A stretch of DNA of 64,000 nucleotides from Takakia lepidozioides (Eukaryota > Plantae > Bryophyta). The position numbers were made by a program, and so were the translations under genes. The notes below the pieces were generated by a model. The model was not told where the DNA came from. It saw only the letters and a program-made list of their open reading frames with translations, and ran no database searches. The stretch is taken from NCBI GenBank assembly GCA_030704615.1, contig CM060733.1, positions 36,890,001 to 36,954,000 on the forward strand, read 5' to 3'. Positions within the stretch are counted from its first letter, which is position 1. Each line of letters begins with the position of its first letter. Positions 2,971-42,781 of this stretch are shown here, in pieces.

Positions 2971-3534
2971 GTTCAATGACTTTATAGCTGAATCTACATG
3001 ACACTCTTCCACAATATTTGGACCTTTCGAAATGATCCCTAAATATTTTGAAATATAATTCACATGTTTCATTGAAATCCAACCTTATTCTATTCAATGT
3101 TTTAATCCATCAATTGAAAACTTGCAATACATTGGTTCATGGTACTACTATACTGTAAGCATGGTATGGATGTTTACTTTTCATTTGTATATTATCTTCT
3201 TGAATCATCTGTTTATGTCATACATCTATCAATTTATTAATAACTTCATTCAATCAATCTTATCTTTATAATTTTCTGATGCAAAGTACGTCATTTGACT
3301 TATCATTCGATGTTACATGAATGGGATTGTGCAACTTCACAAGTTAAATGACTCAATATTCCACGATATTATTATTAATACTTGAATTAATTTTAATTAT
3401 GTTATATATTAAGTTTGGTCCGGATTTAAGCCAAAAGTCCGGAATTACTTAAAATAGGGTTATGTGCTGTTCAGTCCGTCGCTCCACAGAAACAGCCTGT
3501 GCTGCACGTGATGATGTGTCCACTCTAACCCGTG

Positions 3535-5160
3535 TCACATCTTGTTCAGCCATAGTGTTTGAACACTCATTCCGTATCCTCAATGCTCCCACATTTGGCA
3601 TACATGTCCACGAGGGTGTTGTTCAGAATCACATCTGGTACAATTCCAGCTTTGGTGATGTCACCATGGACCTCTCTCCGCTTTTCCAGAGCTCCCAGGC
3701 TTGCACACGTATTGCAAATACAAACAAATGATGTGGTTGGGCTTCACCTCTTCGCGCAACATTTGCTCATAGGTGTCCAAAGCATTTCTACCACACCCAT
3801 GCTTGGTAAATTCTGCCAACATTATATTCCACGTGATCAAAGATGTTGAGACATTCTATTGAACACTTGGTGAGCATCCATGATGCTCCCGCACTTAACA
3901 TACATGTTGACAAGGGTGATGAGTAGAAAAACATTTGGCGTGAATCCACGTAGGATAATGTGGTATGCGCCTACTTTACAGCCTCCAGACCATCCATCTT
4001 GATGCACTTAAGCAAGAGACAGACATATGTATCTGAAAATCTGCTGAAATGTCTCCTTGGTTTAAAGTCTGTAGAGCCTCTGTCAATCTGCCTGCCGCAC
4101 AAAGTATCTTCACATGCCCCAGAAGTGCAAGAAGAGGCATCGTGGACTCCTTCTCTTGATCCTCTTTCCAAAGCTGTGGTCATGGTTGAGGTGCTTGTAT
4201 TATCAATTGTGCCGTTGCAGTTGCTGCCTTTAGTTGACCATAAACCCCTGCAGGTTTCTGTAGCTATTGATCTACATGTAATCATAGGTAATCTGAATTG
4301 CATCTGCTTCTCTCTGTAGTCCAACATGCATTCACCTTTTTTGTCTCCATTGTCCTACCATTGACTGAGGTCGGAACAGTGTTCATTCCAAAGCTTCTCC
4401 TCATCTCTATTATCTATTTCTGGATACTTTCTTGCTGCCACATCGGCAGTAACTTGTCCAAGTCACTCCAAACCACCATAGATCCACCCAACGAGCTAAT
4501 TTACAGAATTCAATATGCATCTTAGGGCCGAGTCTGATGAGAGGGCAAAATAGGCGGAAATAGGTTGAAGAAGAAGGTGTGTCATGACCCATGAAGACCA
4601 TCAACCCAAAATGACCTCTTGTGTGTGCTGCTTGTGTCCATAGTCAAGTAATGTTGGATCGGTCTGTGAGAACCACCACAGTGCAGCTAAGCAGGTAGAG
4701 ATTGAAACACGGCCTGGCAAGACCAAGCTGACTCTCGCAAGAACCTTATAAACATCAGGAAGAATACCAAATCATGGTACTAATAGGAGCCAATAGCCCA
4801 CATTGGACTCCAGCACCAGCCAACAATAATCCTGAAGTAGTTACCCCGCTTACTGAACGAAGTGTTCTATACTCACCCTCCGACAATTATAAATCAATCC
4901 CTCTTGGTCTTGGCACACAAAGGGTTCTTTCAAGAACTCTGAAATATGCTCATTTTTTTTCCTGGGATTCTCACTGGAGAACGTTCTCTTGGATGCGCCG
5001 TTTGAAGAAATGCCCTCCGCACAGTTGAGCTCTAGAACCCTTCTTACTTCATGGCTGTATATTATAGATCGCCTCGGCAAGCCAAACCTATCTAAACCTG
5101 TTTTAAATGCCAGGCCTTATCAGCCTATATAGCCATTGCGCGCGCTCTCTCTCTCCTTTG
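3535..5160 (-). pseudogene. PLS-class PPR pseudogene with a degenerate PDF-like N-terminal motif (copy 1)
   Basis: Frameshifted PPR motifs (TYVCLLLKCIKMDGLEA..; NTLVDMYAKCGSIED..). Upstream EEKLWNEHCSDLSQW*DNGDKK is followed by a GT donor. Truncated after a few repeats; the 5' boundary is approximate. Confidence 0.8.
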
Positions 5161-5264
5161 AACATCAACAAAATCAGGGAGGAAAATGGTCAGTCTCGAC
5201 GAAGTATCGTTCAAGAAATTATTTTCGGATTTTTCGGGCAATCCGGGCAAATAGAAAGAAATTG

Positions 5265-6321
5265 ACGACGTACGAAACGTGGCGACGACAGGTGGCTACG
5301 AAACGTGGCGACGATGACGTGGCACTATGGCACCCTATTCCAGCTCTACGCTAAACTAGCTCTCGACCTTCGGTCGTCACTAGAATTTTATCCTTACCCG
5401 ACTGGGATTGTATGTGCACACAAATATAAAACCTGGACCTGGAGGGTTCATTTTTTAATTAAAAAAGAGCAACACGGACCCTGGGGTATATTGAAAGCCC
5501 AACACTGGTTGTTACTTGTTACCGGGTTAAATAATTGCGTGGACCCTCAATACTAGTCCAGGGAAAAAAACCGTCCTTTCAGGTGTATTTATTCCTGTGG
5601 TTTTGGGTGAGGTTACCTTAAGAGCCTCCCTACTAAACTGACTCATCAAGAAAGGTATCTTGATATAATGGATGTTATTTTTTTTTATCTTTTTGTTTTT
5701 CTTTGAAGGCATGAGAGAGCTCGAAATTTTGTTTTCCAAGAAAGGTTGAGGAAAAAATAACCTCAAATACAAGCCATGAAGGCTGAGGAAGGGGATGCCG
5801 GCCGATGACCAAAGTGACCACAAAAAGCCCTATTGTAGGGGCTAATCAAGGGTTCCCCCTCCTTGGTTTGGAGGGTTCAAAGGAAAGCTGAAGCCTTGGA
5901 TCTGCCTCGTTGGAGCTTCCACGGTGTCTCCAGTTAACATCTGATTCATCTTCATCAGTGGGCGAAAGGCGGGTGCTGACTGAGCTATTTACATGTATAT
6001 TTTTCCGAGGAACATTTTTTCAAAATATTGGACCAGAGAGCTGGTTGTCCAAAATGTGTAGTCAACCGGTGTGTAGCTAGTCCGGCGGATATCCTCCAAT
6101 CCGGATGTTCAATTTCTCATACCCACGGGATATGATTAGTAAAATTGGATGGATCCAGTTCTGGATAGAGCGATACAGGGGGTTGATATCCAGATGGGTG
6201 TATATGTGCCCAACACTGCTTTTAACACGATGACGTGGCGTGACGACGATGACGTGTCTACGATGACATGGCTACGATGACGTGGAACTATGGCACCCTA
6301 TTCCTGCTCTACGCTAAACTA
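5265..6321. promoter_or_regulatory. Divergent intergenic region with two copies of an ACGTGG-rich block (G-box/ABRE-like)
   Basis: gatgacgtgg(c/a)actatggcaccctattcc(a/t)gctctacgctaaactag occurs near 5312-5358 and 6276-6322, each preceded by further ACGTG motifs. It lies between the head-to-head PPR loci. Confidence 0.3.
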
Positions 6322-7503
6322 GTCTCCGAGAATTACTTGCATGATCTCCTGAACACTTCCCCTTTGCTTGCTAATAGGAAGTAAACGTGTGTATACTATT
6401 CGAGCAGTGGAAGCGAGCCTTCGGACTGTGTCTTCAGAGACTGCGGGATGGCAGCGATGGTCAGTGCGCGAGGAGGCGCCATGGCCGAGGTCCAGTTTTT
6501 ACCTTGCGGTCATGCTTCGGGAGTCCTTGCCCCATTCACGGCTTTAACAGGCCAGGCTGGGGAGGTGGAAGGGGTGATGCCGGGCCCCAAACTGTTGCGA
6601 GGGATGGCCATGACGCGTCCCAGCCTGCAGGGATTATGAAGAAAGGTGTAGATATTTGGAATTTGGGTGATCTTCTTGGGTTGAGTCTAAAGTGAGAGCG
6701 ACGTCGGAACCCAACCTGACAGAAACTACATCCATCTTTGGTCGAAAACCTTCACTTAAGGGCGGTAGAGAACTATATTCGAAACCATTTCTTCCTTCCA
6801 TAAGCTCTTTCAGTATCTGCTGAAATACCTTACATGTCTTCAATTCATATGAGAGGGGAGGTTAGTTTATGGAGCACCTTAGAGTAGCATTCCAAAATAA
6901 TCACTAGGAGCTATTAAAGGATCGCTTTCTGCTCTATCACTCCTCAATATAAATTGAGATGGTCAGAAATCGGCGACGTTCTCATGGTCTTGTAGTGTTG
7001 CACACAGGTGAAGCAATGAGCGAAGAGTACCTCAGATCCTGCGAGTATTCTGCCAGGTGCTTGAACTCATGACAATTTTGCTCTTCCTCGCAATAAAAGC
7101 AGCAGTTCTTATTAGGCTGTTCGATGTAGTTCCCTATATTTTAAAGAAGCTTGGAGCTTTGGTGGTTTTAGTCTGGTCGATTGAAGCATAGCTGCTCAGC
7201 TGCCCATGGCGAAAGTTCAGCTGCACGACACAAGGTGGAACACAATCTGGTGAAATTTTATCTCAGATTATGATCACATATGGGCTGTGGATGGACATGA
7301 GGCTCATGGTTGCCTTGAAAGGCGGGATTGGCCATAACCAGCTCCATAAGTTTCTGCTGGAAGATCTTATTTTTGGGGTTGAAATTTTTGTGTCCAAGAA
7401 GCTAGAGGACGAAGGTACTAAACTTGTAGATGTCATCCACTGCTGCATTGGCTCCTCTCAATAAAGACTCGCGTTACTGCAGTTCTTGCATGCAGGTCCA
7501 GCA

Positions 7504-10435
7504 ATGAGCAAAGAACAGCTGTGGCAGGAGGTCTTCTCACATCCTACACAGTGGTGGGACAACAGGTTTGAGAAGGTAGGCTATCTTAGTCTAGGAGTTT
7601 GGCAGTGGATAAGGAGGGCTTGCGACTGAAACTGGCCTGCCAATGTTTTGTGGACTGAATTGTATGTCTAGTTGCTTAGATTATTGAGCATTTTTCTCTT
7701 TGTGGCGAAAAAGCAGCTAGAGATGTCTTACACCGCAGCAATAAGCACATAGTTTTTCCATTTTAGCCAGACCAGAAATTAGGTTGCCCAAGCTCTTTGA
7801 AGCATCGTCGGGGATTTGGTAATTGTAGCCTGGTCTATGGAAATTTTTTGGTTGAAATGAAATCACTGCTCCCCACTTATGGTTGTCACAGAAAAATCCA
7901 AGGTCACCATACCTCAGACATAAGCGCACAAAAGAAGCTGTTTGGATTCTCGGTTGGTTAAACCCTCCTGGGGTGACAGCGGAGCTAGCTGCCATAACGC
8001 CAGTTCGACCTCAATCTGCCAATGGTCCAGGTTATGGGCGAAGGACAGAGCCTGGCCAAACTTGGTGTGTGGAAGAAGTCGAGTATCAACCACAATCAGC
8101 CTGGTTTGGAGGACCAAAAAGGAAACTAAACAACTCTTCTGGCACTTCCGGTGGGGATGTGATGACACTTTGTAAGAAAGGACATTTGAAAGAGGCACTG
8201 CACATTTTGAATGAACAAGGCATACGAGCAGACTCCAGTACATATGTCTGTGCCTTGCAGGGTTGCACAAAAATGCAAGGCCTAGCAGAGGGAAAGCAGG
8301 TGCACGCCCATATTATCCAAAGTGGATTTCAGCCAAACATTTTTCTGCTGAACACCCTTGTGAACATGTATGCCAAGTGTGGCAGCGTGGTGGATGCACG
8401 CCAAGTGTTTGACAAAATGCCTGAAAGAGATGTAGTTACGTGGAATACAATGTTAGCAGGATATGCAAAGCATGGGCGTGGTAGGGAGGCTTTGGAGATA
8501 TATGAGCAAATGATACAGGAACGGGTGATCCCAAATAGGGTCACATTCGTTTCTGTTCTGAAATCATGTGCCACAACGGGAGCCCTGGAAAAGGGCATAG
8601 AGGTTCATAATGACATCATGAAAACTGGAATTGTGCCAGATATTATTTTGGGGAATGCCCTTGTTGACATGTATGCCAAATGCGGGAGCATGAAGGATGC
8701 GCGTCAACTGTTTGAAAAGATGGTTAAAAGAGATGTGGTCTCATGGAGCTCTATGATAGCAGGATATGCTCAACGTGGGTATGGTAGGGACGCTTTGCAG
8801 ATCTACGACCAAATGATACAGGAAGGGGTGACACCCAACAAGGTCACATTTACTTGCGTTCTGAATGCGTGTGCCCACCTAGGAGCTTTGGCAAAGGGTA
8901 TAGAGGTCGAGGCCGACATCAAAAAAGCTGGAATTGTGCCAGACATCATTCTAGAGAATACACTTGTTGATATGCACGCCAAATGTGGGAACATAAAGGA
9001 TGCATGTGAAATGTTCAACAAAATGGCTCGACGAAATGTGGTCTCATGGAACGCCATGATCAGTGGATATGCTCACCATGGCTGTGGCAGTGAGGTTTTT
9101 GAGATCTATGAACGAATGTGGCAGGAAGGGGTGACACCAAATGGGGTCACTTTCACTTGTATTCTCAATGTGTGTGCCAACCTAGGAGCCCTGGAAAGGG
9201 GTGTAGAGGTCCATGCTGACATCATGAAAATTGGATTAGTGCAAGACATCATTGTAGAGAATGCCCTTGTCGACATGTATGCAAAATGTGGACGCCTGAA
9301 TGATTCGTGGCAATTGTTTAACAGTATGGCTAGACGAAATGTGGTCTCATGGAACACCATGACTGCAGGATATGCTCAGCATGGGCGTGGTTGGGAGGCC
9401 CTCGAAATTTATGCGCAGATGAGAGGGGAAGGGGTGATGCCTGACAACGTCACATTTATTTGTGTTCTCAAGGCGTGTGCGAGTCTAGGAACCCTGGAAA
9501 AGGGCAAAGAGGTCCATGCTGACATCCTGAAAGCTGCAATTCTGCCAGATATTGCTCTGGAGAATGCCCTTATCGATATGTATGTGAAATCCGGGAGCAT
9601 GATTGATGCCCATAAAATGTTTGCCAATATGGCTGAAAGAGATGTAGTGTCATGGACCACCATAATTGCAGGATATGTTGAGCATGGGTGTGGTTGGGAG
9701 GCCATCGAAATGTATGAGGAAATGATACAGGAAGAGGCGAGGCCCGACAGGTTCACGGTCAATTGCGCTCTCAATGCGTGTGCCACCCTAGGATCCCTAG
9801 AAAAGGGCAAGCGCATCCATGCTGACATCAGCGAAAGAGGAATTGTGCCAGATATTATTTTGGAGACTACCCTTGTGGATATGTATGCTAAATGTGGGAG
9901 TATGGTGGATGCGTATCAAATGTTCAACAATATGGCTGAACGGGATCTGGCCTCATGGAACGCGATGATCACTGGCTGTGCCCAGCATGGGTGCAGTAGG
10001 GAAGCCCTGCATCTGTTTGAACAAATGCAACATGAAGGCTTGAAGCCAAATGATATCTCCTTTATAGGTATTCTCTCTGCATGTAACCACAGGGGCCTGG
10101 TGGACGAAGGCTGGTATTACTTTGACTCCATGAGTCAAGATCGTGGCCTCACTCCTACAGTGGAACATTTTGGCTGTATGGTAGACCTTCTTGGCCGTGG
10201 AGGGCGTTTGGATGAGGCAGAGGACTTCATTAACAAAATGCCAGTGGAACCAGATGCTTCGCTGTGGAGGGCCTTGCTTGGTGCCTGCAGAATTCAAGGC
10301 AACGTGGAGTTAGCAGAACGTGCCGCAAAGGGCATTCTTAAATGTGATCCACAGCAGGAGGAAGCATATGTGCTGCTAGCAAATGTCTATGCTGCAGCTG
10401 GGAGGTGGATGCCAGAGCATAGGTTAGAAAAATGA
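7504..10435 (+). CDS. PLS-class PPR protein (L-S-(P-L-S)x5-P2-L2-S2-E1-E2) with an N-terminal OSB/PDF-like motif; exons 7496/7504-7575 and 7892-10435
   Basis: 850-codon ORF with 101-aa PLS triplets (WNAMIxGYAxHG / FxCVLxAC / NALVDMYAKCG) and an E domain (WRALLGAC, AYVLLANVY). A phase-0 GT-AG intron at 7576-7891 joins LWQEVFSHPTQWWDNRFEK to KNPRSPYLRHKRTKEAVW. The true start is uncertain. Confidence 0.9.
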
Positions 10436-11149
10436 TGGAGTACAGTGGTTCAGAAAGTAGCCAGGGAGCAGCTGTTGAAGGCAACAACTAATTGCACATT
10501 TGTTGTGGACGGCAAAACTGCAACCAAAATGAAGGAGGAAGGTTGCCCTATCCATGCCATCAAGAACCGTTGGGTCTGAGGTGACTCCCACACCACGACA
10601 CAGATCATGGGATGAGCAGTTCTTTTAAGGGACTACAACTGCTTTCAAGTGGGGGTGCATTCTTGTGGGAATTACTGAGTGAATCAAGCAAATACATGGA
10701 AGAACTGAACCAGTCCAAACTTGAGGACTGGAAAGCTTATACTTCATCGTGTTTTCGGTAAGCGAAGTCTAAGATCCTTTACATTCAGCAGTCAGTTGTG
10801 GATTTTCTGTGAATCACAGTGCAGTATGGAAACTGAACAGCAGCAGTGAAATCATGGCAGAGGAGTCGATGACCCATTGCAGCAGGTAACTATATGCATG
10901 AAGAAATCCAGATTCCGATTCTTTTCTGGAGGCTGCATCTTGCTTCAACCCTCTACTTTGAAAACGTCACCTCCCACATCTGAAACCAGAAAAGGCCAAA
11001 ACATTTGTCAACTAAAGATTGACATATATGAAACAACTTTGTTCTCCAGAAGATCTTTAACAAACTTCGTTCAAGTCAAGCAGACTGGAGCTCAATGTGC
11101 CCAAGGATAGGTGATAGAGAGGGGAGGGTGCACGCCAGAAAAGCATCTG

Positions 11150-11846: not shown

Positions 11847-12770
11847 TGCCTTTTTGCCCTCATTTTCTGCCTGAACCTTGCATTCCTACCACAGATTAGT
11901 TTTTGCCTCCACATGAGGCTGAAAATGACTAAAACAATTGCCACCATCCTGAACACGGTAAGAGCCCTTTATCCCTTGTTGTAAACTTTATAATCCCACA
12001 CATCACTGCTCCTACTTCGCACTTTCAAGAGCTTATGGTGCTTCCCAACACCACTTTAACAAATGCCCATATGTTTATAACATTCTCTGCTCCTCACTAC
12101 AGGAAGAAGTCTAATATCGTACCCTTGCATACTAGTTGGCTAGCTCTGTGGCTTGGGATTGTTAGATGCAGGTTGTGGTCAGTCTTTCATAAGGTTGCAG
12201 GAAGCCCCATTGGACCATCCCCCATGTTGCAGGTTATTCACATTTCTGCCACCCACAGAGCTACTGACTGCACTTTAATCACAATAACACATGGTAACAA
12301 CACAAATGCAATGATCCAACCCTTCACTCGTATTACTATCCACACACATTCTCTACAATGTACCGCCCTACCAATTCTGGTACAAGTCTTATTACTACAT
12401 CACAAATACCATACATTAGCATGTCCCTAAGGCTACCATATTAGGCTGTTGATTAGCCATCCAGAAAATGCGAGGGACTGGAAGATAGAGTCTCGCTAAG
12501 CAGTTTATAGTCTAATTATTAGTGCTAATCTGCCGAATCGAGTGTGCAGGAAGTGACCAGGATTTGTGAACTGTCAGTGCGAAAGGGCCAAAGATGAGGC
12601 TCAAAGGTAAGCACGCTATGCCAACACCCCAAAAACCTGCAGAGCAAACCAGACACTGCCATGTTAGGACTATCCTAGCCCCTATTTCCATTTCTTTTGT
12701 GTGGGTAGGAACTCTCTTTCCTTCCCATGATTTCCGCAACATGCTGTAGCATATTTCTATTAACATAGAT
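11847..12770. repeat. Dispersed repeat, also at 24310-24780, 33671-33910 and 52692-53350
   Basis: Shared blocks tgcctttttgccctcattttctgcc..., aatgcaatgatccaacccttcac... and ctaagcagtttatagtctaatt.... Confidence 0.8.
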
Positions 12771-13571
12771 GTAGTGCAACAGACTATCGTGACTCACCCT
12801 TCTGTTGAAAATCAGCTAGTTTATCGTCAGGGATGGTTTTCTGTTTTGGTTTGAAGGAATTAAAATTACATCAACACTCTTCAAGTTCTACCCAAGGAAA
12901 ACAGTCTGGGGCTGGTTTTTGTTTGTATATCTCCCTCATATCTCTCATTGAATGCTGATTTTGGCGTTGGCCGACCAGTGAGGCACTTGGAAACCATAGC
13001 ATCCTTCCCATCCCTGCCAATGACAACATCATGGTGTGTAGCTGAAAGGAAGGACAGATTACCTCCACTCGGCGGACAAAATGTTCCAGCCTGTGGAAGG
13101 AGCACAATCGCAAAGAGAGGGAGACATTAGGCATCGATGTCACTTACTGCCTCAGTCTCAAGCCCTGAATATCTATCTGCTCTCTTAAGATATCCAGACT
13201 GAACTGAACACTTTCAAGCCTACTTTTTCAAAGGAAAGATGAAAGCCAAGAGCGAATACATGTCCAGTTCAGTCTTATGATCCAATTGCAATGGCAATCT
13301 GTCTTTTTGCTAGTGTTGGGGAACCATTGCGCAAGCCTGTGGACAGGAGGATGCTGGGGCCATCCTCCTAAACTTGTGAGGGCCATCTTCCCCAGATTTT
13401 CGCATAGAACTTTGCATATTTGTGGACCTTCACTCTCCACGTGAAAGTTAGCTGTGGTAAACATTGGAAGAGATAAGATAAGATAAAGTTTCTTAAACAT
13501 CCAGTGAATTTACAGAGCCTACTGCTCAACACACAAGCCATCGAGGGCCCAATGGATGGTCTGAAGGCACA

Positions 13572-13650
13572 TGTTGAAGGATTGAACCCAGGATCACCTA
13601 GGTTATGCACAGGCAAGGCACAAACACCCAACCACTGGGCTACCTGCTCA
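13572..13650 (-). mobile_element. tRNA-derived SINE-like head (second copy ~56063-56141)
   Basis: The minus strand shows an A box TAGCCCAGTGG and a B box GGTTCAATCC at tRNA-like spacing, with no proper cloverleaf. Confidence 0.5.
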
Positions 13651-13991
13651 AGTGCAGTGATTTTATTGAAGCTTTGCCTAGTCCACGAGTCAAAAAAACA
13701 GTTGTCAAGCAGCAGGTTTAGGTGTCAATCACTATCTTCAGTCATGCCACCAGGATATAGTTACAAAGGTTGTGTCAAGTGTTCAAATAGCAACCAGCAG
13801 CCTTCTCCAACATTGCTGGCAGCCCAACAGCTTGCCCTAGCCTACATCTATTAACACCTCTGACCCTCCCTCCCCACCAAGAGTAGTTAGTGGTGCCACT
13901 GAGCGGACAAAAGATGAAGCCAAACAGAATCTGACAGCGATGTGTCAAAATTGCACATATTCTGCAAACACTGTTACGCTAAACTAACCTC

Positions 13992-16451
13992 TTACTTCCT
14001 TTTTTGCTTTGGGGGCTCAATGTCTGAATCTGAATCCTCCTGCTGCTCCTCATGCTCCCCATCTTCATCATCATCGTCCTCAACCTCCTCTTCATTGTTA
14101 CCTTCCGCATCCTCCTCCTCCTCTCCTTCCTCTTCCCCATCATCACCCTCCTCATCGCCCTCCTCATCACCCTACAGCACAACAGGACAAGAAAGTTGCA
14201 ATGACTTACATTCTTTATACGACGTTATAAAGCACCATTTAATTTAATTTCATTCTTTGGTAATGGTCCTCTGATAACAATGCTTGATCTAAAAGCATAA
14301 GAAATGACTGACAACTGAATGAACAACCACTAAGTTAGTCAACCATAAGAAAAGTTGTCAGGGCTTCATGTAGTAACCATCGATGAGAAATAGCTGGAAA
14401 ATGTCAGCCAAGGTAGATGTACAATGACATCCTAGTAATTGGTTCTGCATTTTTACAGAGGTGTTTGCTAGTCATACATTGCTTTGTGTTCTCAGGCAGT
14501 CCTACAGGACCTATGGGCAACATCTCATTTTGAAAAATACGTGATAGTCACGTGGGAGATTCAATACGATATTATACACCCCAGCTTTTAGTGTGCGAGT
14601 TACCAGTGACTCCTCTAGTTAACCATCCGTTGACATGTCTCCTAGAAATCCTAAATAAACAACTCAAATCTCCACATGCACGCTGTTTGATGCCATATGC
14701 ATTTTTGGTATGCCTCGTCCAAAACTACTTTGACCCCACAAAGTGATGCACAAATACAGTGAGATGAAACCTGAGCATACAGTCCAACTGGGAAATTCCA
14801 AATCTTCAAGTCCAGCCACATGCATAATATCAAGCAGAAATCTGCCCAAACAAAATGTGCTCCTTTTAAACTTTATGTTACTGACCTCTTCCTCGTCCTC
14901 CTCCCCCTCTTCCTTTCCCTCGGCCTCCTCCTCATCCTCAGCCTCACCTTCGTCCTCACCTTCATCATCAACACCTTCCACATCCTCTTCCTCCTCACCT
15001 TCTCCCAGATCTCCTTCCACATTGTCTTCCTCATCATCGTCATTTTCATCGTCATCCTCTTTATCTGCAAAAATATACAGAGTGAAGATACAACAATTAG
15101 GTGAGTGCCTGCTCAGGTCACACAAACTAGTAATACATCTACACCTATGGTCAGTTTATAACAAGGTCCAACATAGCCGACTGACGGGTTTGACAATCTA
15201 ATATGTGCTTCCTCTTCATCATATGTAGTCCTAGCAGAGTTATAAAAAAAGCAGTGAGCTTGCTATTTCTAGCACAGAGAACAACCTTTATGTTTAACAG
15301 CTGTAGAAACTCAAGCCCCTCATCAGAACTTCAATCTGTACATGTCCACCAGTGTCTGGGAACCATTGGACCAGAGGAAGTGGCCTATTGAAGCCCATAC
15401 AATTATATGAGAACCATGAACTGCTTTTTCCGAACATGCATCAAGTGACAATGCAATCCTACATATATGGTACACAGCAATACGAGAAGCTCAAAGAACA
15501 GAATGTACGTTTGCGGTACTTGTGGCCATAGACCCAGCACCCACTTCCGGCAGAACAAGAAGGAACAGACACTACCTTTGTGAGCGGCTCACTCCAGTAG
15601 TGGTACTTACCTCGATATAACAATTAGTTCGGGCTTTCCAGATTTCCTCTAGAAAGCCCTTCACACAAGCCTCTGCTGTGTGAGCTGCCCAGCAATTAGA
15701 CCCCAACAGGACCAGGGATTTAGGCTCAGCCTCGAAATTTTGAAAGTTGGTGAACAGAGATGCAGGGACTATGTTCTTGATGGTCCTGGAGAGGGTCGCT
15801 CTCTGATGAGAATACCCCCAATATTGTATCAAAAAATGGATATTGTCTTCAGGCCGCCCTCACATCGGGCATTGACAATCTCCCTTTCCTCTCTGCATCT
15901 GTCTATTATTCAAAGGAGGACTCCCCACCCCGAGTTTATATTTCAGTCTCATGCCGAGGGTCGGTTAGCCCTTCAGATCATCCTTAAGGTCCCCACCCAT
16001 GTCACAGACAGGAAACTGGAACAGAACAGAACAGAGACCAGAGAAGTGAGAGAAGAGCATCTAGAGGGGTAAATAAGAATGACAATATAGCTGATCCCCA
16101 CAGAAAACTGCATATCTTGGCTTGTCAAGAGGAACATTATTGCATCTAGGGATCTTTTGCTGCTGGCAGAATGCAACTATTGCCTTGAGGAACTCATGCG
16201 CACTCAAATTGTTGTTGTTCACAAATGCAGCATTTTTTACCTGCTGGTGCAGATGTTAACCACTCAGCAGTCTCTGAGTTGCTCAGTTGCTCAAACTCAG
16301 ATATGCCGCTCCTTTTGGTTGTTGCATGGTCTGTCAAGTCAGCCTTGCAGTAACCGATGTCCTGTAGCCTGTCATATGCCTGCATCATCATGCTCCACTT
16401 TACATTGTCTCCTCTTAGATCTAACCAAAATCCCAAGTAACATTTCCACAT
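13992..16451 (-). CDS. Hyper-acidic (Asp/Glu-rich) protein, ~189 aa, with C-terminal NLS-like PPKQKRK; exons 16451-16241, 15064-14886, 14171-13992
   Basis: ATG at 16451. GT-AG junctions are phase-compatible (phase 1, then phase 0) and give an open spliced frame ending DSDSDIEPPKQKRK*. Confidence 0.7.
15517..15935 (-). mobile_element. Non-LTR retrotransposon (LINE) 3' fragment in an intron; relatives at 22345-22780, 57917-58335 and 63745-64000
   Basis: Homologous blocks encode a Cys/His knuckle-like CxC..IHFLIxC and FLExIWKAR, typical of the C-terminus of LINE ORF2. Confidence 0.55.
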
Positions 16452-18544
16452 ATCAGAAGCCCCTGGGAAGCCCTCTCCCCCTCCCTCTGCCTGCTCTCAT
16501 CCTTCAACTTGCAACCCAAAAAAACTCGCTGCACAAGCTCCTCAGAGTTGTACCATAGATATTTTCAATCCCATGCAAGACTGAATTCTGGAAGGGTAAC
16601 GGATAACTCGGATCCTGACTAGAGATGCATTAGCTACATGAGTCTAAGCAATTCGAACGAATAGCGCAGTAGTTATGGCACCTAGGCACACCATGGACGG
16701 TTACTAGGTTCAAAAGTAGGAACCAACAAGCCACCAAGCCAGCATGAGTTGTGGCTTTTATTACATCGCCCACACAGCCATAAGGTTGGGCATCACATGG
16801 CCGTTTACAAGTCAATAGGGAAGACTCGACACTAAACCCCGGTCACACTAAATTAGCCATATCAGTGCCAACTTTCAAACAAGGGCTTGAGGGGGCATTA
16901 GTGATGTTGGGGTTCTATTTTTCCACCTTTGCAACTGTTATTGGGCAAGTGAAACAACAGTCTACATTATGCAAGGTTGCATGGACAAGGAAAATACCCG
17001 ATTAAGGACTAGAGTGTCAAACATCTTAAGAGACGTGTGGCTTAAAATTGTCAGCACTGGAAATAGCTCGAGAGCCAAAGAGACACTGCACATCACTCCC
17101 ACCACCAGATGAATTAGACAATCACTTGCTCCCAGATAGGGGATCAAATATCATGTACGACTCTTATGATTACACTATGAGAAAGACTTGCCAGGTTCTG
17201 AAGATGGAACTGAAGGTTCACAAGAAGCAAGATATAATTTTAATAACTAGCTACGGTGTGCAGAAACTACACCTCTATTCAGACTTGGAAATGAAGCTTG
17301 CCTATGTACATGGGAACCCAGTTATTGTAACTACTCGCTAGTGGCCCAAAGCTGACAATAACTACATAGAACTGACCCAAGGGTTGGGGCAGTGCCATAC
17401 ACAAATTCGGAAATAACACATACCTGTAGGGGAGGACATTAGCCTAGTAGAGCAATAAACCCATGAATGCCTAGTTTACTTTTATGACAACTGACAACAA
17501 TTTCATAGACCTTCCTTGCACTTGTTTGGATCAAACAATGTGTGTAAGGAACGTTTGATAACAACAGACCAACCACCAAACCAGAATATATCCACAATTT
17601 CAAGCCAGTATTGAAAGCAAAACAGATCCTTGTGCGAAGCTAAGAACACCCAAAGCTGTGGCAACGACTCAACCCCACAAACAAGTTCTCTGCACTACGC
17701 TTTTCTCTGACCTCGGAATGCCAATCCCGGATCATATGTGCATGCTGGTCAGAGCCACCTTGCACCTATAGACTGCCTCTTGCATCTTTGCTTACAGTAA
17801 GTTATCACATTTCTATACTCCAGATTCTGTGGGATGCTTCTATGTTGAGGATTTGGAGTAGTTGTTATTCTACCTTTTAAGTTGTAGTTCAGTTGGGTTC
17901 AGGTCTCTCTCTATATTCCAGCCCGTTCTCACATTCCAGAGTTGCAAGTTTTCTGAAGGGTGCTCGTAGAGTGCCAAGTCAGCTTCAAGATCTCACGAGC
18001 TGGAATCCTGGGGAAGCTCATTCTCTGGGAGTTGGAATTCGGCTCCTGCATAACAGAAATGGTAGGCTGACAAACTGAATTACTTTCCTTACTGTGGGAG
18101 AGAGATCTCATTAGTGGATGCTTTGGGTTGCCCTGTAGACCTCGTTTCCGCTGAGGGACAGTTGCTACATCAAGAAATGAATCATAACAATGCTGGCTGT
18201 GACAAGCATAAGCACTATTAGGCAGTGTCAAAGAAAAATATGTATGTATCCTGTTGCCACTTTGGGCTGTTAGATTACTAGCCTGCTAAATCTCCCAGAA
18301 CATGCAAATCTGCTGATCACAACCTGTCAATGAAATGCCTTTTACCCGCGCAGGGCTCTTTTTCTCCTTTCCTCTTTTCTTTCCATCTGCTATGCTTTCT
18401 TTCTAGGCCTTCCCTTCTGGCCCTCTTTCCCCCCTCTTGTGCTGGGTAGTTCTCTGTGTTCATAGCCCCTTGGAGGTTATTTTTCCTCTTGTATTCTACC
18501 CCTCTTATTCCAGGGCTTTCTATCAGATCCTGTTTTTAAAGAAC

Positions 18545-18870
18545 CCAACAAACAAATGCAGCGGGAATGCTTCAAGCCGAATGGCATCACCTTTATTTCT
18601 CTTCTGTTTGCTTGCGGCCATGGGGGTCTAGTGGATGAAGGCTGTTAATACTTCGAATTCCATGAGCCGAGATTATGGTGTTACTCATACAATTGGACCA
18701 TTTTGTGGACCTCCTTGGTCGCATAGGGTCATTGGATGAAGCAGAAGATTCCATTAACAGAATGCCAATTGAACCGGATGCTGGGCTCTCTGGGTCCAAG
18801 TCCTTACATTTTAGCCTGTGGAGGAGCAAAAAAGCACCTAGCATTGAACTGGCTATGTCAACATTCAGTT
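18545..18870 (+). pseudogene. PLS-PPR C-terminal fragment (P2-L2-S2); second copy ~59982-60308
   Basis: QMQRECFKPNGITFISLLFACGHGGLVDEGC*YF, then after a frameshift VDLLGRIGSLDEAEDSINRMPIEPDA. Confidence 0.85.
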
Positions 18871-20073
18871 AGGTCAGTAGTTTTGACCATCGGAAGATGT
18901 GTGAAGAGGGATGTTGTTCCTTCCTACTTGGTGTTAGATACCAAAGCATTAGGAGCCAGTCCCCTTAACATGTATGACAATTGACGAATGCACCTTCCAC
19001 CTTCTGCAGGAAGTTGCTTGGCATCTCTGATTTAGCCGCCACCAACTTGGTCAATAGAAGCCACAACATGAATGGATCTACCTCTGCACCGGCAACCAAA
19101 CAATGACATGACCATTATTTAAGATGCTGAGGTAAGTTATGATACGATCGCATGTAGTTTCACACTTTGGGAGTATGATCTCATTGTGGACAGCAATGTA
19201 CTATAGAAGGAAGAATAGGTCAGTTGCATGCTGCACAATGAACTATAACAAGATGACATACACGGAACAATTATCATGCATATCAACATAACTCATGGTT
19301 CCTTGCTCCACTTGTATACTGACCCTAGCTTGTGGCTTGTTATAAAAATGTCAGGGAATGGCTGGAACTGCCACAGGTCAGGCACAATCCACCCACAAAT
19401 TGAGGCAGGGAGACCTCCACACTTTCAATCTTAAGCGGGACTTTGTACACTTCCTTACCTTACCATGCTACATGAATTTTTGTAATCGGCTTCTGTTTGA
19501 AAGTATTTCCACAAGCGACAGGTGACATGCAAACTTGAGTTCCAGTGTATGCGAGTCGATCTGACTACGAGAAAGTTGCCCCATTGCAACTTACAAGAGA
19601 GTACCTCTCAAATGATTGTGTACAATCTGGTGAAAAAGGGAGCAATCTAACCAGTCAAACTAGAAAATTCTGCATGGTAGTCGAATCTTCTTGACATAAC
19701 CGTATCTACAAATCCCTCATTTTGTTCTAGTTGAGGTGGATTGAAAAATTTCCTTGCAAATACAAAGCAAGATTCTGTGGCTTCCAGGGGGGACAGCTGG
19801 AAGGAAAGAGTAGCTGGAAAGAAAAACTGGATGGGCTGCGACAATGAATTGCAGGACACTCTGAGAGCTCTACTTCAAAAGAACTACCCAGACATCAACC
19901 CTCATACAATTGCCTGTACATTTCTTGCAAAGCCTACAACAATTTTATTAATGACCAACCTCAAACAATGTAAATCTGGAAAAAGGGAATTTCTCACTTG
20001 ATACACCTAGGGAGGACTAACTGACCGCAATACAAAGCCCCAAAACTTTCCAGCAAGATAGCAGGTTTTGGTG

Positions 20074-23000
20074 TTATTGGCGTCCCACCACACCAGCAGC
20101 CAATGCTGCAGCAGACTTTTCTGCTGTCTCTTTCTCAAACTCTTTTCGCCTTTCCTCTGCATGCTGAACCAGGCCATGAGCCATAGCTTGGTGCTGAAAA
20201 TCCAATGATCCGGAAAGGGCTTGGAATCTTGCCGGATCGGTGCCTGATATTGCTGTATCATACAGACAGCAGTTACCAAGAGGTAAATTGAAACTGGAGG
20301 TATATACGAAACCGTTGACTTTCTATACTAATGTCAAAGGAAAAAAAACACACCATTTTCATGCAGAAGACCTCTCCAACCTGTTTCTTGCATCCTTTCA
20401 ATTCTTGGTGCGCAAGCATACAAGTGCTGCGATCATTTATACCTATTATTAGAAAGTTTTTTCGTGAAATGCAGAAACAAAGGATTGTTTGCAGCCTACT
20501 CTCTTACAGGAGGATACAGCCTAGCATAGCTACGGTAGTACACACCCATACACAAGAGTTACACACCTTTCATAACATCAGAAAAGAAGATGAAGGGATC
20601 CACGTTGTCAATGGGTGCCTGAAACTCCTCATCGTCCGTAAACTCATCATAAGAATCATCGGAGTCATCCCCATGTGTTGAGAAGACTTTTGCCTGTTCA
20701 GCCCAGCAGAATCAACAGATCATCTCACCAAACAGATAAACATCAGTGTCAGTTCTACGTCCACACTCAGGCCTAAGGGAATCCAGTACAGATTGTGAAC
20801 ATGAAACGATAGTCTAATCCAAATTGAGAATACCCACACTGATTTGAGGACACATGGGTTGACTGTACAAGCATGTATTCTACCTGAGCGGCCATTCTGG
20901 AGCTTCTGTGTTTCAGCTTCTTCATCACCCTCATCATCATCATCCAGCTCCTTATCCCAGTCCCCGTCATCACCAGAACGCCAGCCATCCAAATCTTCAT
21001 CATCCTCATCCACATCCTCCACCTTACCTGACTCTATAAACAGACCCTCCCAGACATGTCAGAAAGTGAAGGAGATTGAAAAGACATACATGAACATTAA
21101 AAGAACAACTGGGTACTGCCATAACAATGACGAAGACATGTCAAAGACGACAAATATCACAGCATCCAGAAGGCACCCTGCAAAAGAAACACGAATGTCA
21201 TTAGAACAAGTAGAAACCAACCTGCGTGCTGATCCTTGTAGGCCACAAGCAGCTTGAGGAGAGCCCGGAAAACCTGATCCAGACCTACCTGCAACTCAGG
21301 TGGCATTGCTGCCACCGGCACTGGCAGCAAAGATGCCATCCCCAATATGCAAACCTTCTTATCATGCTCCCTGTAACACACCATTCCCCAAAATGAGTAA
21401 TCAGAAGGAACCTCAGGAGCCATATAAACGAGTTCAACAAGCCACTAGTTACAATCAGAAGACCACTTTCTTGTATGTTTCATGGTTAGTTTCATGGTAT
21501 GTTTCATAGATAACAGGTGCCAGTCTTCCTTGTATGGCTTACAAATACAACAATACCTCGTAGGAATCAGTACCTGATGAAGTGAACAGGTTTTCCGGTC
21601 GTCTTCACTTCGTAAAGCATTTGAAACCAAGCTTGGAAAACTTCGCCAGTCACTCCCAATTTTTGTAGAATATTGAGACATAGGCCTGCATTGTAGTAGA
21701 GCCCATTTGCAACCTGCAGAAGTAGAATCCCACAAGCCTCGAATTGCCCATTACTGAAACTCATAAAATGAGCTTTTCAGCAAGGTACATCAATGGTGTC
21801 AGACATCTTTTAAAGGCTAACCAACCAAGGAGCAATCAATTGGCAAAACCTGAAAAAGTGATGTAGGCATGCTTCACACTAGGAAGTACACACAACCCCT
21901 TCATGATACAACTAATTCAACTCTAATTATTCCAAATGATACACAATGCCAGAAATTGCATGACTATCCGAATGAATTGATGAGTGATATTAAATGACAA
22001 AAAGGATAGCGAGAGGCGAGGGGCCGGGGGGGTGTGGTGCTTTATCCGTCAACTGAGTCGCGCGAAGGTAAGTTCAGAGACCTGTGAGAGAAAGCAGACG
22101 TACCACTTCCATCACTAAGTCCTTCAAATAGTTCTTCCTGGTCTTTCGAAGCCTTTCAACACTGACTCGTAAGTAGGGCTCCACCCATTGACCCACACGT
22201 CCCCGGCAGTTTTGTAACACTGCCTCTATCAACTTTGGTGCTGGCTCGATATCACTGTCTTCAAGTTTGTCATCTGATAAAACCTGTCACATCTTAACAC
22301 TTTAAGCAGGTGCGATAAAGAATGTACTCATTAGGGATTGTCTACCGCAGCCTTGTGGCCATAGACCCTGCGTGCCCAGTTTGGGCGGAACAAAAGCGAC
22401 CAGAAACTACCTTTGTGAGGGGCTCAATCCGGTAGTGGGACTTACCTTGGTATAGACAATTAGTTCGGGCTTTCCAGATATCCTCTAGAAAGCCCTTCAC
22501 ACAAGCATCAATCTGCTGTGTGTGAGCAGCCCAAAGTTAGACCCCAACAGGGCCAGGGCGTTAGGCTCAACCTCACGATTTTGGAAGTTGGTGCACAGAG
22601 GAGCCAGGACAACGTTCTTGATTGTCCAGAAGAGGGTCACTCTATAGCAAGAAAATCCCAGACAATGTATCAGGAAATGGATACTGTAATCAGGTTGCCA
22701 CATCAGGCAATTACAATCTCCTCTTCCTCTGTGCATCTGTTTAAAGGTAGGCTTCCCGCCTGGGGTTTAAATTTCAGTCTAGCGCCAAGGATAAAAAGAC
22801 AAATATAGAGAGAAACGAAGCTCAACTCAGGATCAGTTTTTGGAAGCACAAGCCAGCAATGAAGAAGCAAGAATAACATCTTCACCTTTCAAATATGTTA
22901 TCCTTGGTGACATCAAGCCATGAGAGTTTTCACCTGCACATTCCATGAGGGACAGCAAGGATAACAGAGCTCTTACCGTGGATAAAATCTTAAAAAGGCT

Positions 23001-34699: not shown

Positions 34700-35860
34700 G
34701 GATTCATATATTGCCCCCATGCCGCCGCCTACTTATGGTATATGAGTTGCTCCACCCCCACAGTATAGGCCTCGACCCCCCCCCCCCCCCCCCCCCCTCC
34801 CCCCGTCACTATGCTGATCCAGGGATGCTTGGAGAGTATGGTGAGTATGGCGAGTATGGCGAGTACGGTGAGGGTCATGAGGATGATGATGAATATCCCC
34901 CACAGCCGCAACAAGCGTAGTATGCTGCCTTGAATTGGGGGGGTCGTTCGGCCTGGCCACAGGAAGGGCAAGTCACAGATTACAACGAGGAGGAGTCTGA
35001 TCATGTGGAGGAGGCTGCACCTCTAAGTGTCAGGGAGCGGCACAATGCCAGAAGAAGGGCTAACCGGGCTGCAAAGGCAGCTGCAACACAACAAAAATTG
35101 GATTGTGTAAAGCAGGGGCTTCCCGGACATACAATGATAATGCTGGCTGGGCATGGAGAGCCCATTAATCCTGAGAAATTTATGGATGATAGGGCTGAAA
35201 GGCCAAGTCCTTCGTTTTCTTGATTTTACAAAGCACGTGGACCAACAAAATGAGGTTGTTGTCCATCTCATTAACAAGAATTTGGCTGATATGTACACCT
35301 ACAGCCCTGGCCAATTGGATTTGAGCATATGAGGGAAATAGCTAACAAGATGCTCAAAACAACTAGATACGATCTACATCGTTTGTTTAAAAATAGTGAG
35401 GGAAAATCTGCCAATGTGTCTGATTCCCAATGGGATACTCTTGTAAAGTACTGGTCATCACACTCTTTCGCAAAAGTATCTCAAAATATGAAGAAAGCCA
35501 ATTCCTACATTCAAAAACCAACCAAGACGAGGCGTGGTGGCAAGGCAGGTGTTGAAGCACGTCTAGTGAGCATCTCAGGCACCATTGAACTTCAGTTTCG
35601 ATTTCATTTTTTGGATAGGGAAGGGGATATTGATAGGCAAGGTACTAAGGTATCCCTATGCATGCAGGCTGACTCAAGTGGCCGGAGCCCTTCTCTTCAG
35701 GAGATCCAAGATGAATTTGTCCGTAAAGCAGCCCACTCCGAATACCAGGTAAGTGCACTTGTATATACATTTTGTCCCTTGTGGCATTACCTTTGGTTTG
35801 GTGATTGTCCATTGCTTTCAGTTTGCCTCTAGCATCTCATTTGTTCATGTTGTTGACAGG
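34700..35860 (+). pseudogene. CACTA/En-Spm TnpA-like (Ptta/Transposase_24-type) remnant
   Basis: VSDSQWDTLVKYWSS..VSQNMKKAN..TRRGGKAG motif in ORF 35329-35832; upstream frames are broken. Confidence 0.6.
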
Positions 35861-37488
35861 ACCAAAATTCTGCCATACGGACTTTGTCAAAGCTACTAAC
35901 CCCCAACCGTTGAACGGGCCCTACCTTGCACAAAATTAAGATCCGTGCAAACTGCCAACTGTCACGTAGAAGGTAAGCTACCGACCTAAAAAATGCCACC
36001 TAGAAGTTATTTTATTGGAGGACTTTTAGGGATAACAATTCATTTAACTTCCTAAAATACAAGATTCCTTTCTAGGAGCATACTTTTCAAGATTCAGGAA
36101 AAAGCCTCCACGGCCTCCCTGGTGGTTATTTTTTCCACCATTTTGTGAACCTTATTTTGATTTAATTTGATTAAAAGGGCCTCTGTCCCCCTTTCCTTTA
36201 AAAAAAAGAATTAAAAAAAGAAGAATAGTTTACTTGTGGCAGGTTCCTTCCTAGGCCTCTCATTTTAAGATAATAGGGTCTTCAATGTGCACGTGCGATG
36301 TGGCCGGTGGGCCCCGCACACGGACGACCGGCTCCCCAGCACCCCGCCCGCCCCGCCTGTCACGCACCTCACTTCGGTAAGCTCCCCTTCAAGTCATAGT
36401 TACTCGCTTTGATGCGCGCGCCTAACTCCCAACCTAGCCGCTGGGCCAACTTGGAGCTTCGGCTGCTCACCGGGGCATAACGGTCCCCCTTTGTTCTCCC
36501 AAAGAACCCTCCACCGATTTGGGCCAAGCGGGAATTCCCTTGGTAGTTGGCAGTCCGGAACAGCTCCCCACTCTTTGGTCGCTTTCCGGCTCGCTCGCTT
36601 ACTCACTAGTTTTTGGTCACCAATGGGCTTGCACCGTTCTCGGGGTTACTACTCCCTATATATACTTCTGTAGCTGTCCGCGGGGGTTTCACAAACAACC
36701 ATGCCATTTTATGGCGAACCACCACGAAAACCCTCGACTCCCGGTGATGAGTCGCGGTGAGTCTTGGCCCATCCACCACGGCCCCTATGGACCGTGATGA
36801 GTCCCAAGACTCCCCACGACTCCCACCACGAGGTCTCCGCCCCAAGGTGAGTCATATGCCACCCCCACTAAGTCCCGCTAAGCTACCACCACCCCTTTGT
36901 GAAGCCACCCCCACCGCATCCCGGTGTGCGGGGCTCCACCTAGTGAGCACCTCCGCCTCCTTGAGTGCCTTGGGCACTCAAGGGTGCTTCAGCCCCCCGT
37001 TCCTATCGCTGCCACTGCCCCCACCACAGGGGCAGCCCCTCATGTGTCCCGACCCCCCTACCCTCAAGGCAAAGGGCCGCGACACCGCCCGCCACTGCGT
37101 GCGGTTGCCCAGCCGCAGGCGCGGCTGCAGCAACCGCGCCCGCGCCCCCGTCCGTCGCGCGGCCAATCCCCTGCCCATGAGTCCGCTGCCCTCCAGTCTG
37201 CCAGTCCGCTGCCCAGCAGTCTGCTTGTCCGCCAGTCTGCCCGCCAGTCCGCCGGCCAGTCCCCTGCCATCCAGTCCGCTGACGGTGCAGGATCGCCACC
37301 GTCCATTCCCATAACCCATCCGAGCCCTCCATTTTTAGGGCTGCAATTCAAACCTGCATCCCTAACGCCTGCCACTTGCCAGCAGCCGCGAACATGCGCA
37401 CTGTTCTCCTGGCACGTTGTCGATCGTGTCCTGTACTGCGGCGCGTTTCTTGCATGTTCAGAAGCGTGTCCTTTGTACTGTATAGGGC

Positions 37489-38672
37489 ATGGACGTGGAA
37501 GCAAAACCCGATGATATACTGATCACGGAAAGCCCGCTTATACGGCCTCTTCGACAATGTTTGCAAACAGCAAAACCAGGACCCTTCAATAGGAAGGATC
37601 TCCATTGGAAGAGTGAGACGCAATATGGGTTTATGGGTGTGCGAGTGAATGTTGAAAAGGCCTGCATACCTTGGGATAGAGTTGGTGACTTCGTCCTGGG
37701 AGAGGAGAGTTTGGAGGACTACCCCACTCAGTTTTGGGTGAATGTCCATTCTAAAGTGGAACCCGGCTCGCGAAAAGCACCCAGAGCCAACACATTTATG
37801 TCCAGTATTATGTGTGCACCATCCTCAGTCCTTTTGACGTTTCATTGCATGTCTGTTGCCATTTTTTGTTTCACGAGTTCTCCGATTTTATGCTTCCTCA
37901 AGTCGTTGGATATCGATTTTAGAATTTTCTGTCCAGGTATCAATGCTGCTACGGTCCTGATGACAAGCGTACCAACAAGGCAATAGTGGAGGATCCAAAA
38001 TAGAAGCGTGGAGGACCTCTTGTGGGTGCTGGAACATCTTGCCCTCATAAAGGCCCAAGGAGAAAGAAGTCGGAGTATGGAGAGTCTTACAAACGTGGTT
38101 GCCAATGTTGTTTCAAGGTCCAGCAATGCTATCTTGCCCCTGACATCTGTGTCCTCACGTACTACAACAACATGGAGCATACAGATGCGCAAGGGAAACC
38201 CTCGCATGGGAAGTCCGCAGAGTTCAGGAACACCCGCCACGCCTATGCACCACTTATTAGCGAGGAATTGAAAGCCTGGGTCGTCGAGTGTTTGTGCCGA
38301 GGCCTGTCGGTCGCCCAAATCATGATGGAGCATAAAGAGCACGTGATGAACAACACCGGCTTGGGCGATGCATTGACCCACGATGATTTCTTGTTGGAGC
38401 AAGATGTTCGCAACCTTGCCGAGAAACGTGCGTGACAAACCTTCAAAAAGCACGCCGATGATGCAGAGAGTGTGCGCATGTGGAGAGATCAGAATCCTGC
38501 GTCCGTTTTTTTCTATCAAGAGGAGAAATTAGAGCCAACATTCGAGCATTTTGATGGAGATTTGACCTTCACTATTGGCATACAGACTCCGTGGCAGAAA
38601 CGACGAATGCTGGAACTAGGACATGACCGTATCGTTGCATGTGATGCAACCTTTGGGACAAATCATGACAAG
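37489..38672 (+). pseudogene. MULE transposase, 5' half
   Basis: IPWDRVGDFVLGEE, YQCCYGPDD, KRGCQCCF..H..G..HG and IGIQTPWQ..GHDRIVACDATFGTN (first catalytic Asp), with in-frame stops. Confidence 0.85.
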
Positions 38673-38774
38673 GTACTATTCGAACGATTCCATGGACTTG
38701 TACGAGCATGATAGCATAGTACCATGCAACATTCACATAATTTGGTGTGCTGACTCTTTTTGTATGTTTTCATG

Positions 38775-39369
38775 TGTACATTGCGGAAGACCGTTCAAAA
38801 TACCTCCCCTACCGTCCTAACTTTGTCCATTACTAAACTCCAAGAAACGTAGCCACCAGAGCCCATGAGGACTTAGTCATTTTCCTGTCCCCTCTAATGT
38901 TCCCGCCAACTAGCTAGAAATAGCTGACAGCTAGCAAGAACCGATGGGTAGTGGACCTAGCTCTAGTAAAATAGCGTATCCACCGCTTTAGACATGGCCA
39001 AATATAGCAAGGATAACAGCCATAGCTGCAAGTTGTGTACAACACCACAGCGTGAGCTCGGCGCTCGAGACGTAAGCGAGACTGTGATAAGAGAGTACAA
39101 CGTAGCACAAGGAGAAGGGAGCGGTGCGGCCAATGAGCGCATCGGCACGAGAAACATACAAGCACACAACAAGATCCAGGATGTGGAAAGGCTATCCACT
39201 TTACCTCGATGCGTTTCCCAGAGAAGGCTATGTCTCATCACAAACAAGGCTCTACAGGGGCAACTCTACAGGCTCCTCCACCCCCTCTACTGCCTCTCTC
39301 TAACCCTTCTTCTTAGCTTTATTTTGATGGATTCCATGAAGTTTTGCAGTTTTCAGACCGAATGTAGCA
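38775..39369. mobile_element. ~600-bp insertion in the transposase intron (solo-LTR- or MITE-like)
   Basis: TG...CA ends with imperfect inverted termini tgtacattgcgg / ccgaatgtagca; no TSD recognised. Confidence 0.35.
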
Positions 39370-39372
39370 CTC

Positions 39373-39942
39373 CCATCTTACACAAGACCTGCTGCTACGA
39401 GGAACTACACACGCCCACATGGTCGAGCCAACGACCTGGTATTCTGGCTATCCATCAGAACGCGCCCCAAGCACTTGTGTGCCTGCACAGAGGGTCAAAC
39501 CGACAGCTTGTTACGTCAGTCTGTTCAGTACATGAGGCTTCCCGAAGGATGGTCTGCTCTGTGCAGGATGGGTGCTCGGTTTGGCAAAGCACATGCTCTG
39601 CACGTGAAGGCGGGTAATTACATGCTGATGTTTTTTGAAGGGGACCCACGGTTTGAATGCGGACTGTTGCCGGATGACATAAAGGCACTCCAAAAGGTTG
39701 AGTCGGAGTGCACTGATAGACTCCTGGAGCTGTGGTGTCAATTCTATGAGAAGTCGGTTGAGGCTACGTTCACCAACACTATTGCTGTTCTTCCAACGTC
39801 GACGTGGACGGTGTTGAAGTCATTGGGGGTGGGGCAACATGAAAGCCTTCTGGAGGTCTTGAAAGGTTGCCTCAGTACTGAACGACTGGGCAAGGACTTG
39901 AAAGAGTGCGATTTCATTTTGGTGCCAATTGGGGACGAGTAA
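39373..39942 (+). pseudogene. Ulp1/peptidase C48-like fragment, the inverted distal part of the MULE accessory gene
   Basis: LLPDDIKAL..CTDRLLELW..TSTWTVL..CDFILVPI, followed by a GT donor. The catalytic His/Cys exon is not found. Confidence 0.55.
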
Positions 39943-40564: not shown

Positions 40565-40820
40565 GAGGAATTGCAGACTTATATTGTCTTTTTCGTGACA
40601 CCTACACGACGTGAAACCTTGTCTCTTTTCGAGGAATTGCAGACTTATATTGTCTTCTCCGTGACACCTACACGAGGTGAAACCTTGTCTCTTTTCGAGG
40701 AATTGCAGACTTATATTGTCTTCTCCGTGACACCTACACGACGTGAAACCTTGTCTCTTTTCGAGGCATTGCAGACTTATATTGTCTTCTTCGTGACATC
40801 TACACGACCTGAAACCTTGC
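40565..40820. repeat. 66-bp tandem repeat, ~4 copies
   Basis: gagg(a/c)attgcagacttatattgtc... starts at 40565, 40631, 40697 and 40763. Confidence 0.95.
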
Positions 40821-42756: not shown

Positions 42757-42781
42757 TGTTGGAATGCACAATGTAAGATGG

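Follow-up and report, generated by a model that had tools for sequence, protein, structure and literature searches.

The window, i.e. the whole 64 000-nt stretch analysed from contig CM060733.1 of the seed-free land plant Takakia lepidozioides, contains a nuclear gene with three exons. The gene joins a PDF module, of the type present in OSB proteins, to a long array of PLS-class PPR motifs, and its 3′ end overlaps the remains of a DYW deaminase sequence. Its parts are the following, in window coordinates.

6356–6645, + strand: exon 1; the 5′ end given is the start of an RNA contig
6646–7495, + strand: intron 1, GT..AG, phase 1, 850 nt
7496–7575, + strand: exon 2 of 80 nt, coding for the N-terminal half of the PDF module (LW..F..P..WWDNR..K)
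7576–7891, + strand: intron 2, GT..AG, 316 nt, phase 0, interrupting the PDF module
7892–7999, + strand: start of exon 3, with the eroded C-terminal half of the PDF module (PDFK to PYLR, LW to VW, PPW to PPG)
8150–10255, + strand: array of 21 PLS-class motifs in the order degenerate P, L, five times S-P-L, S, P2, L2, S2
10256–10435, + strand: E1 and truncated E2, with a frameshift near 10407 and a stop at 10433–10435
10407–10678, + strand: dead remainder of E2 and E+/DYW deaminase, interrupted by five stops and two or more frameshifts and lacking about 54 residues, among them the catalytic HSE motif

The phase-0 intron at 7576–7891, which the open reading frame track lacks and the first-pass annotation had proposed, is confirmed at the sequence level, with donor GAAG/GTAGGC at 7575/7576 and acceptor CACAG/AAA at 7891/7892. 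If it is left unspliced, the frame of exon 2 ends at a stop and exon 3 is without the upstream half-module. Exon 3 is a single frame through to 10435 and holds the 21 PPR motifs, E1 and the partial E2. The position of intron 2 is the same in three other plants, i.e. in Calypogeia, in Diphasiastrum and in OSB4 of the angiosperm Tarenaya. Exon 1 and the intron at 6646–7495 are additions to the earlier gene model. Intron 1 lies 9 codons before the first conserved Trp, and its phase and place are shared with Calypogeia and Diphasiastrum, where the equivalent of exon 2 comprises the same 27 codons. Within intron 1, a stretch of 29 nt at 6998–7026 (+ strand) agrees in 24 letters with the acceptor and the first letters of exon 2. 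The match scores 38, against a shuffle maximum of 37, and RNA depth is low nearby; the stretch may be what is left of a second, duplicated PDF exon, but is marginal at best.

The start of the reading frame deserves comment. ATG 6448 has a good context, but the 198 nt from it to the donor are one short of phase 1 in the window sequence, where the sole in-frame ATG of exon 1 is at 6636. The RNA contig of exon 1 has one base more than the window, somewhere in 6356–6643. If this extra base is 3′ of 6448, the frame is restored and the length of exon 1 is then like that of Calypogeia. ATG 6448, one nucleotide out of frame in the window, is the likely start codon. Any targeting peptide is subject to the same reservation, because the frame hangs on a 1-nt difference at an unplaced position. 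A comparison with the N-termini of the fused family gave no homology to exon 1.

The gene appears to be transcribed. Two sequencing runs that contain this species, and are guessed to be RNA, yield pieces that match the window at 6356–6643, 9033–9411 and 10267–10575 with 0–2 differences. The exon 1 piece halts at 6643, which is the left-most cut of the 6645/7496 splice, with 51 letters left over. Read depth is 0 in the bin 7329–7475 (intron 1) in both runs, and 0 or 0.96 in the bin 7623–7769 (intron 2), compared with covered exons. The 7575/7892 joint is not among the 15 joints listed of about 905, and support for this splice is indirect, coming from depth and from conservation of the intron position. 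Exon 2 is overlain by 69 and 27 RNA contigs, with a common different letter at 7540; contigs do not equate to genes, but the pattern indicates that many paralogues are expressed.

The peptide encoded by exon 2 and the start of exon 3 is by sequence a true OSB-type PDF module. In all profile comparisons the two exons were scored separately and the joined protein was left out. Aligned to a profile from 24 natural modules linked to PPR, exon 2 fills columns 2–24 at 38.9 bits and exon 3 columns 25–60 at 38.1 bits, where the maxima of 2000 shuffles each are 13.8 and 6.4. A profile made of OSB modules only gives 29.3 bits for exon 2 and 17.7 for exon 3 (shuffle maxima 10.5 and 11.9), and thus the similarity to OSB PDF motifs proposed earlier is borne out exon by exon. 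In the reverse direction, a profile of PPR-linked modules alone retrieves 1097 representatives at E values up to 0.001. Among these are proteins that bear the names OSB1 (Populus), OSB2 (Phalaenopsis), OSB3 (Anthurium, Euphorbia) and OSB4 (Tarenaya), and several have SSB domains; among 147 new representatives, 68 are SSB+PDF and eight are PPR+PDF. In Calypogeia, in Diphasiastrum and around module 2 of Tarenaya OSB4, a phase-1 intron precedes the PDF coding sequence and a phase-0 intron lies three residues past the WWDNR-type motif. The first module of Tarenaya OSB4 also has the phase-0 intron at the matching place. The introns are not universal: one Sphagnum fusion gene is intronless and a Sinapis OSB-like gene is without the pair. 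The match of both exons to the OSB-only profile, together with the shared intron pair, shows homology with the OSB PDF module, and the module was probably captured at the exon level, introns included, from an OSB-type gene.

No SSB domain matches exon 2 or exon 3, and exon 1, with 66 codons from ATG 6448, is shorter than the approximately 95 residues of that domain. Searches of Pfam, PHROGs, PDB sequences and Atlas features with the module gave no useful match, nor did a word search with residues 1–60 of exon 3. PF26713, common among the matches, was considered as the PDF module and rejected; it is a different domain.

AlphaFold predicts a compact module consisting of a helix, three short strands and a helix, with a pLDDT of 90. 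The linker to the array has a low confidence (pLDDT 57), and the packing of the module on the array is not resolved by the model. Atlas clusters of PPR and SSB proteins match the predicted fold with TM values of 0.84–0.93. Foldseek and VIA find no fold match in the PDB (best Z 2.8), which is no proof of a new fold. The predicted fold also matches two clusters of hypothetical proteins of Uroviricota, of 199 aa (TM 0.74) and 187 aa (TM 0.67), and this model-based similarity may be a hint at a phage relative of the PDF module. A phage relative was sought in PHROGs and viral contigs and none was found; by pattern search, none of the viral contigs encodes the module.

The array that follows consists of 21 PPR motifs, one of them degenerate, close to the 20 or so PLS repeats first estimated. 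It has a 101-residue period and ends in P2-L2-S2, then E1 and the cut E2. Canonical pairs of fifth and last residues are present in all 12 of the S and P motifs after the first, and the median repeat-to-repeat dN/dS is 0.40. E1 is whole. The frameshift near 10407 cuts E2 and removes the PG box, and the complete E/E+ set is absent. Assembly error as the cause of this frameshift is rejected, the RNA contig being identical over 10267–10575. There is no in-frame DYW deaminase with HxE and CxxC; what follows is a remnant with stops and with the HSE region deleted. Seven lesions fall in the 272 nt of the DYW tail compared with none in the 2.5 kb open reading frame, where about 65 would be expected at the rate of the tail. 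The catalytic DYW motif is kept in 28 of 64 fused homologues. The scaffold had originally been described as a PLS-E protein. The PLS array and E1 stand, but the native E class does not, because a DYW remnant at 10407–10678 lies 3′ of the array; judged from sequence, the C-terminus is that of a decayed DYW editor. The C-terminal block of the gene shows 58–63% identity to its best matches and is outside any well-supported clade.

Erosion is also seen in the PDF module itself. The OSB-family motif of about 50 aa is present, but the Pro-Asp-Phe signature is not, and the replacement of PDF by PYL that had been noticed at first reading is confirmed. The D and the F are each fixed in all 74 PPR-linked modules, and in OSB modules D is found in 158 of 165 and F in 165 of 165; the modules were chosen by a PDF profile, which biases these counts upward. 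The second half-module has in addition lost a conserved L and W and scores 38.0 relative to a held-out median of 57.4, with a lower score in only one of 45, and the first half is unremarkable. PYL is best interpreted as decay of otherwise invariant residues. Unable to edit by itself, this copy is now a protein that binds RNA without catalysis, or else a recently formed pseudogene. With its lost residues, dead DYW and worn module, it is a poor test case for the function of the module.

Unnamed proteins with PDF and PLS-PPR, with or without DYW, are present in a liverwort, Sphagnum, a lycophyte and ferns. The module is carried by 26 of the 120 best PPR matches, among them 21 of 29 from Diphasiastrum and two of three from Calypogeia; in the same 120 it is found in none of the 42 seed-plant and none of the 17 named fern matches. 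A search centred on the module extends the list by Adiantum and numerous species of Sphagnum, and the module is also present in a transcript of Pteridium. The first-pass annotation had suggested that similar unannotated fusions might exist in other early land plants, and they do, in Calypogeia, Sphagnum, Diphasiastrum, Adiantum and Pteridium. The studied gene has the family arrangement, with the module directly 5′ of the degenerate first P motif and accompanied by the phase-1 and phase-0 introns. Between Diphasiastrum and bryophytes, identity is 59% in the module, 36–51% in PPR motifs and 18% in the linker; the module is thus strongly conserved in sequence across the family, more so than the PPR motifs. 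A tree of the PPR block shows several PDF-bearing groups. In one clade, with an SH-aLRT value of 99, lycophyte, moss and liverwort fusions are united, and a second represents an expansion in Diphasiastrum. The 58-column module tree, from which the module of the window was left out, has branches without resolution, and the fusions may have arisen once or several times. The locus had been viewed as a special chimera. The PDF module on a PLS PPR scaffold holds, but on the sequence comparisons the gene is one member of an old and expanded family and not a one-off chimera.

Several arrangements of the module elsewhere can be mentioned. The Diphasiastrum locus L005:3267–5650 has small exons that encode three PDF modules; one of these modules is retained in the annotation, and the DYW open reading frame is called separately, downstream. 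Sphagnum has two tandem intronless PDF-PPR genes (L001:521–6850). Three proteins, P0159 (Sanguina aurantia), P0158 and P0162, have 5–11 tandem PDF modules, with no SSB or PPR found by the detectors used.

The gene resembles PLS-class PPR-DYW C-to-U editors such as Physcomitrium PPR56 in its PLS triplets ending in P2-L2-S2-E1-E2, its recognition residues and its DYW remnant. It differs from these in the added N-terminal PDF in two small exons, the cut E2 and the dead DYW. With OSB proteins it shares a homologous PDF module with the same predicted fold and the intron pair of Tarenaya OSB4; unlike them it has no OB/SSB domain, its module is N-terminal and joined to PPR, and PYL replaces PDF. E/E+ PPR factors that use DYW1/DYW2 in trans are similar in having a PLS array and E1 and no catalytic domain of their own, but here E2 is truncated, the PG box is frameshifted away and the state is secondary. 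RRM-PPR (PPR4) and rare MORF-PPR fusions also have an auxiliary module fused to a PPR array, whereas the PDF partner derives from a protein of DNA maintenance and is found throughout whole editing-factor subfamilies.

It is probable that this three-exon gene belongs to an old PDF-PLS-PPR-DYW family of C-to-U editors with an OSB-derived module, and that the copy is now non-catalytic. The ancestor would have been an organellar PLS-PPR-DYW C-to-U editing factor with an N-terminal PDF module. PPR arrays are oriented on RNA with the N-terminus towards its 5′ end, and the PDF module should therefore sit upstream of the RNA footprint. Perhaps, and here confidence is a little short of even, the module of the family acts as a built-in, sequence-nonspecific single-strand grip on RNA. 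Such a small aromatic alpha/beta module just 5′ of the first PPR motif could strengthen binding to the target or prevent the target from folding, the kind of assistance that MORF/ORRM proteins give in seed plants. The PDF module of this copy has drifted, probably to the point of weak binding or none. Without the deaminase, the copy might survive as a sequence-specific RNA-binding PLS-E1 protein that marks a site for a trans-supplied DYW domain or protects a transcript.

The ssDNA preference of OSB proteins weighs against an RNA grip, as do the low-confidence linker, the near-neutral charge (a net charge of only about +1 in fused modules) and, for this copy, the missing PG box and full E2. The PDF is the ssDNA-binding part of OSB1 (PMC6963530, PMC6451138), and recombinant OSB1 and OSB2 prefer ssDNA to RNA (PMC4166229). 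These data, by analogy, would suit a module that tethers the editing factor to the nucleoid, a transcription bubble or an R-loop, with editing being co-transcriptional, much as first proposed for this locus. The core residues are as fixed in PPR-linked modules as they are in those of OSB proteins, and some members of the fusion family have 2–3 tandem modules, as in OSBs, but most have a single one, and the studied copy has lost the invariant D and F and has no deaminase left to tether. Tethering is considered rather unlikely. More improbable still is a module that serves as a protein-contact or folding cap, which would shield the first PPR motif or recruit partners without contact to nucleic acid. 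A short fixed spacing to the degenerate first P motif, the charge and the formation of tetramers by OSB2 (PMC6963530) are compatible with a cap, but the OSB1 PDF by itself is enough for ssDNA binding (PMC6963530), and the linker is flexible in the model and is 9–36 residues longer in some lineages.

A different question is whether this copy produces an organellar protein at all. It could be a transcribed pseudogene in the making, with exon 1 frameshifted, a start at 6636 and no transit peptide, and the product would never be organellar. The out-of-frame ATG 6448, the dead DYW, the eroded PDF and two fully broken paralogues in the same window all fit this, but a 2.5 kb open frame with canonical code residues persists next to a heavily damaged tail, both introns keep their GT..AG ends, and the exon 1 RNA contig has the one base beyond the window; a pseudogene is considered doubtful. 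An RNA grip of the family module, lost or weakened in a non-catalytic copy, is the preferred reading. A broader scenario, which we regard as unlikely, is that early land plants fitted a large part of their RNA editing factors with an OSB-derived single-strand module as a built-in cofactor, either for RNA grip or for docking to nucleoid ssDNA, and that seed plants swapped to MORFs; PYL would then represent a retuned module on a non-catalytic RNA binder and not decay. The complementary spread of PDF fusions and MORFs that this involves is taken from a biased sample of top matches.

In seed-free plants such as lycophytes, ferns and a part of the bryophytes, organellar editing proceeds at many sites in the absence of MORFs as cofactors. 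The PDF module, common to a DNA-maintenance protein and better conserved than the PPR motifs, is a concrete and deletable candidate for an editing helper. The studied gene testifies to the family and to turnover within it, but for tests intact PDF-PPR-DYW paralogues are the better choice. The fusion is real and widespread and seemingly unpublished, with the studied gene as a damaged member. PDF is not among the extra domains listed for Physcomitrium PPRs (PMC9459714). Neither PDF nor OSB is mentioned in a survey from 2026 that covered the editing factors of 364 genomes and states that MORFs are confined to seed plants (PMC13386178), and a 2026 OSB phylogeny, in which only OB+PDF proteins were kept, does not mention PPR (PMC13393729). 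No paper joining PDF and PPR was found; most subscription papers were beyond the search and novelty is provisional. The module has no Pfam model or solved fold match, and surveys therefore miss PDF-PPR fusions.

The surroundings of the gene also contain related sequences. The two broken PDF+PPR paralogues, at 3527–4460 (– strand) and about 50405–51320 (– strand), each have a half-module with a stop and frameshifted PPR motifs and are 95% identical to each other; the one at 3527–4460 lies head-to-head with the studied gene. They are accompanied by a large direct segmental duplication in pieces (3547–5802 vs. 50452–52680 and 12112–22595 vs. 52692–64000) with 95–99% identity, the second copy of which is without the approximately 6 kb that hold the studied gene. 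Inside the duplicated block, short broken PPR-like fragments from the C-terminal part of an array are found at 18550–18836 and 59986–60272 (+ strand). The region at about 35000–49600 is GC-richer and contains several long open reading frames and tandem repeats.
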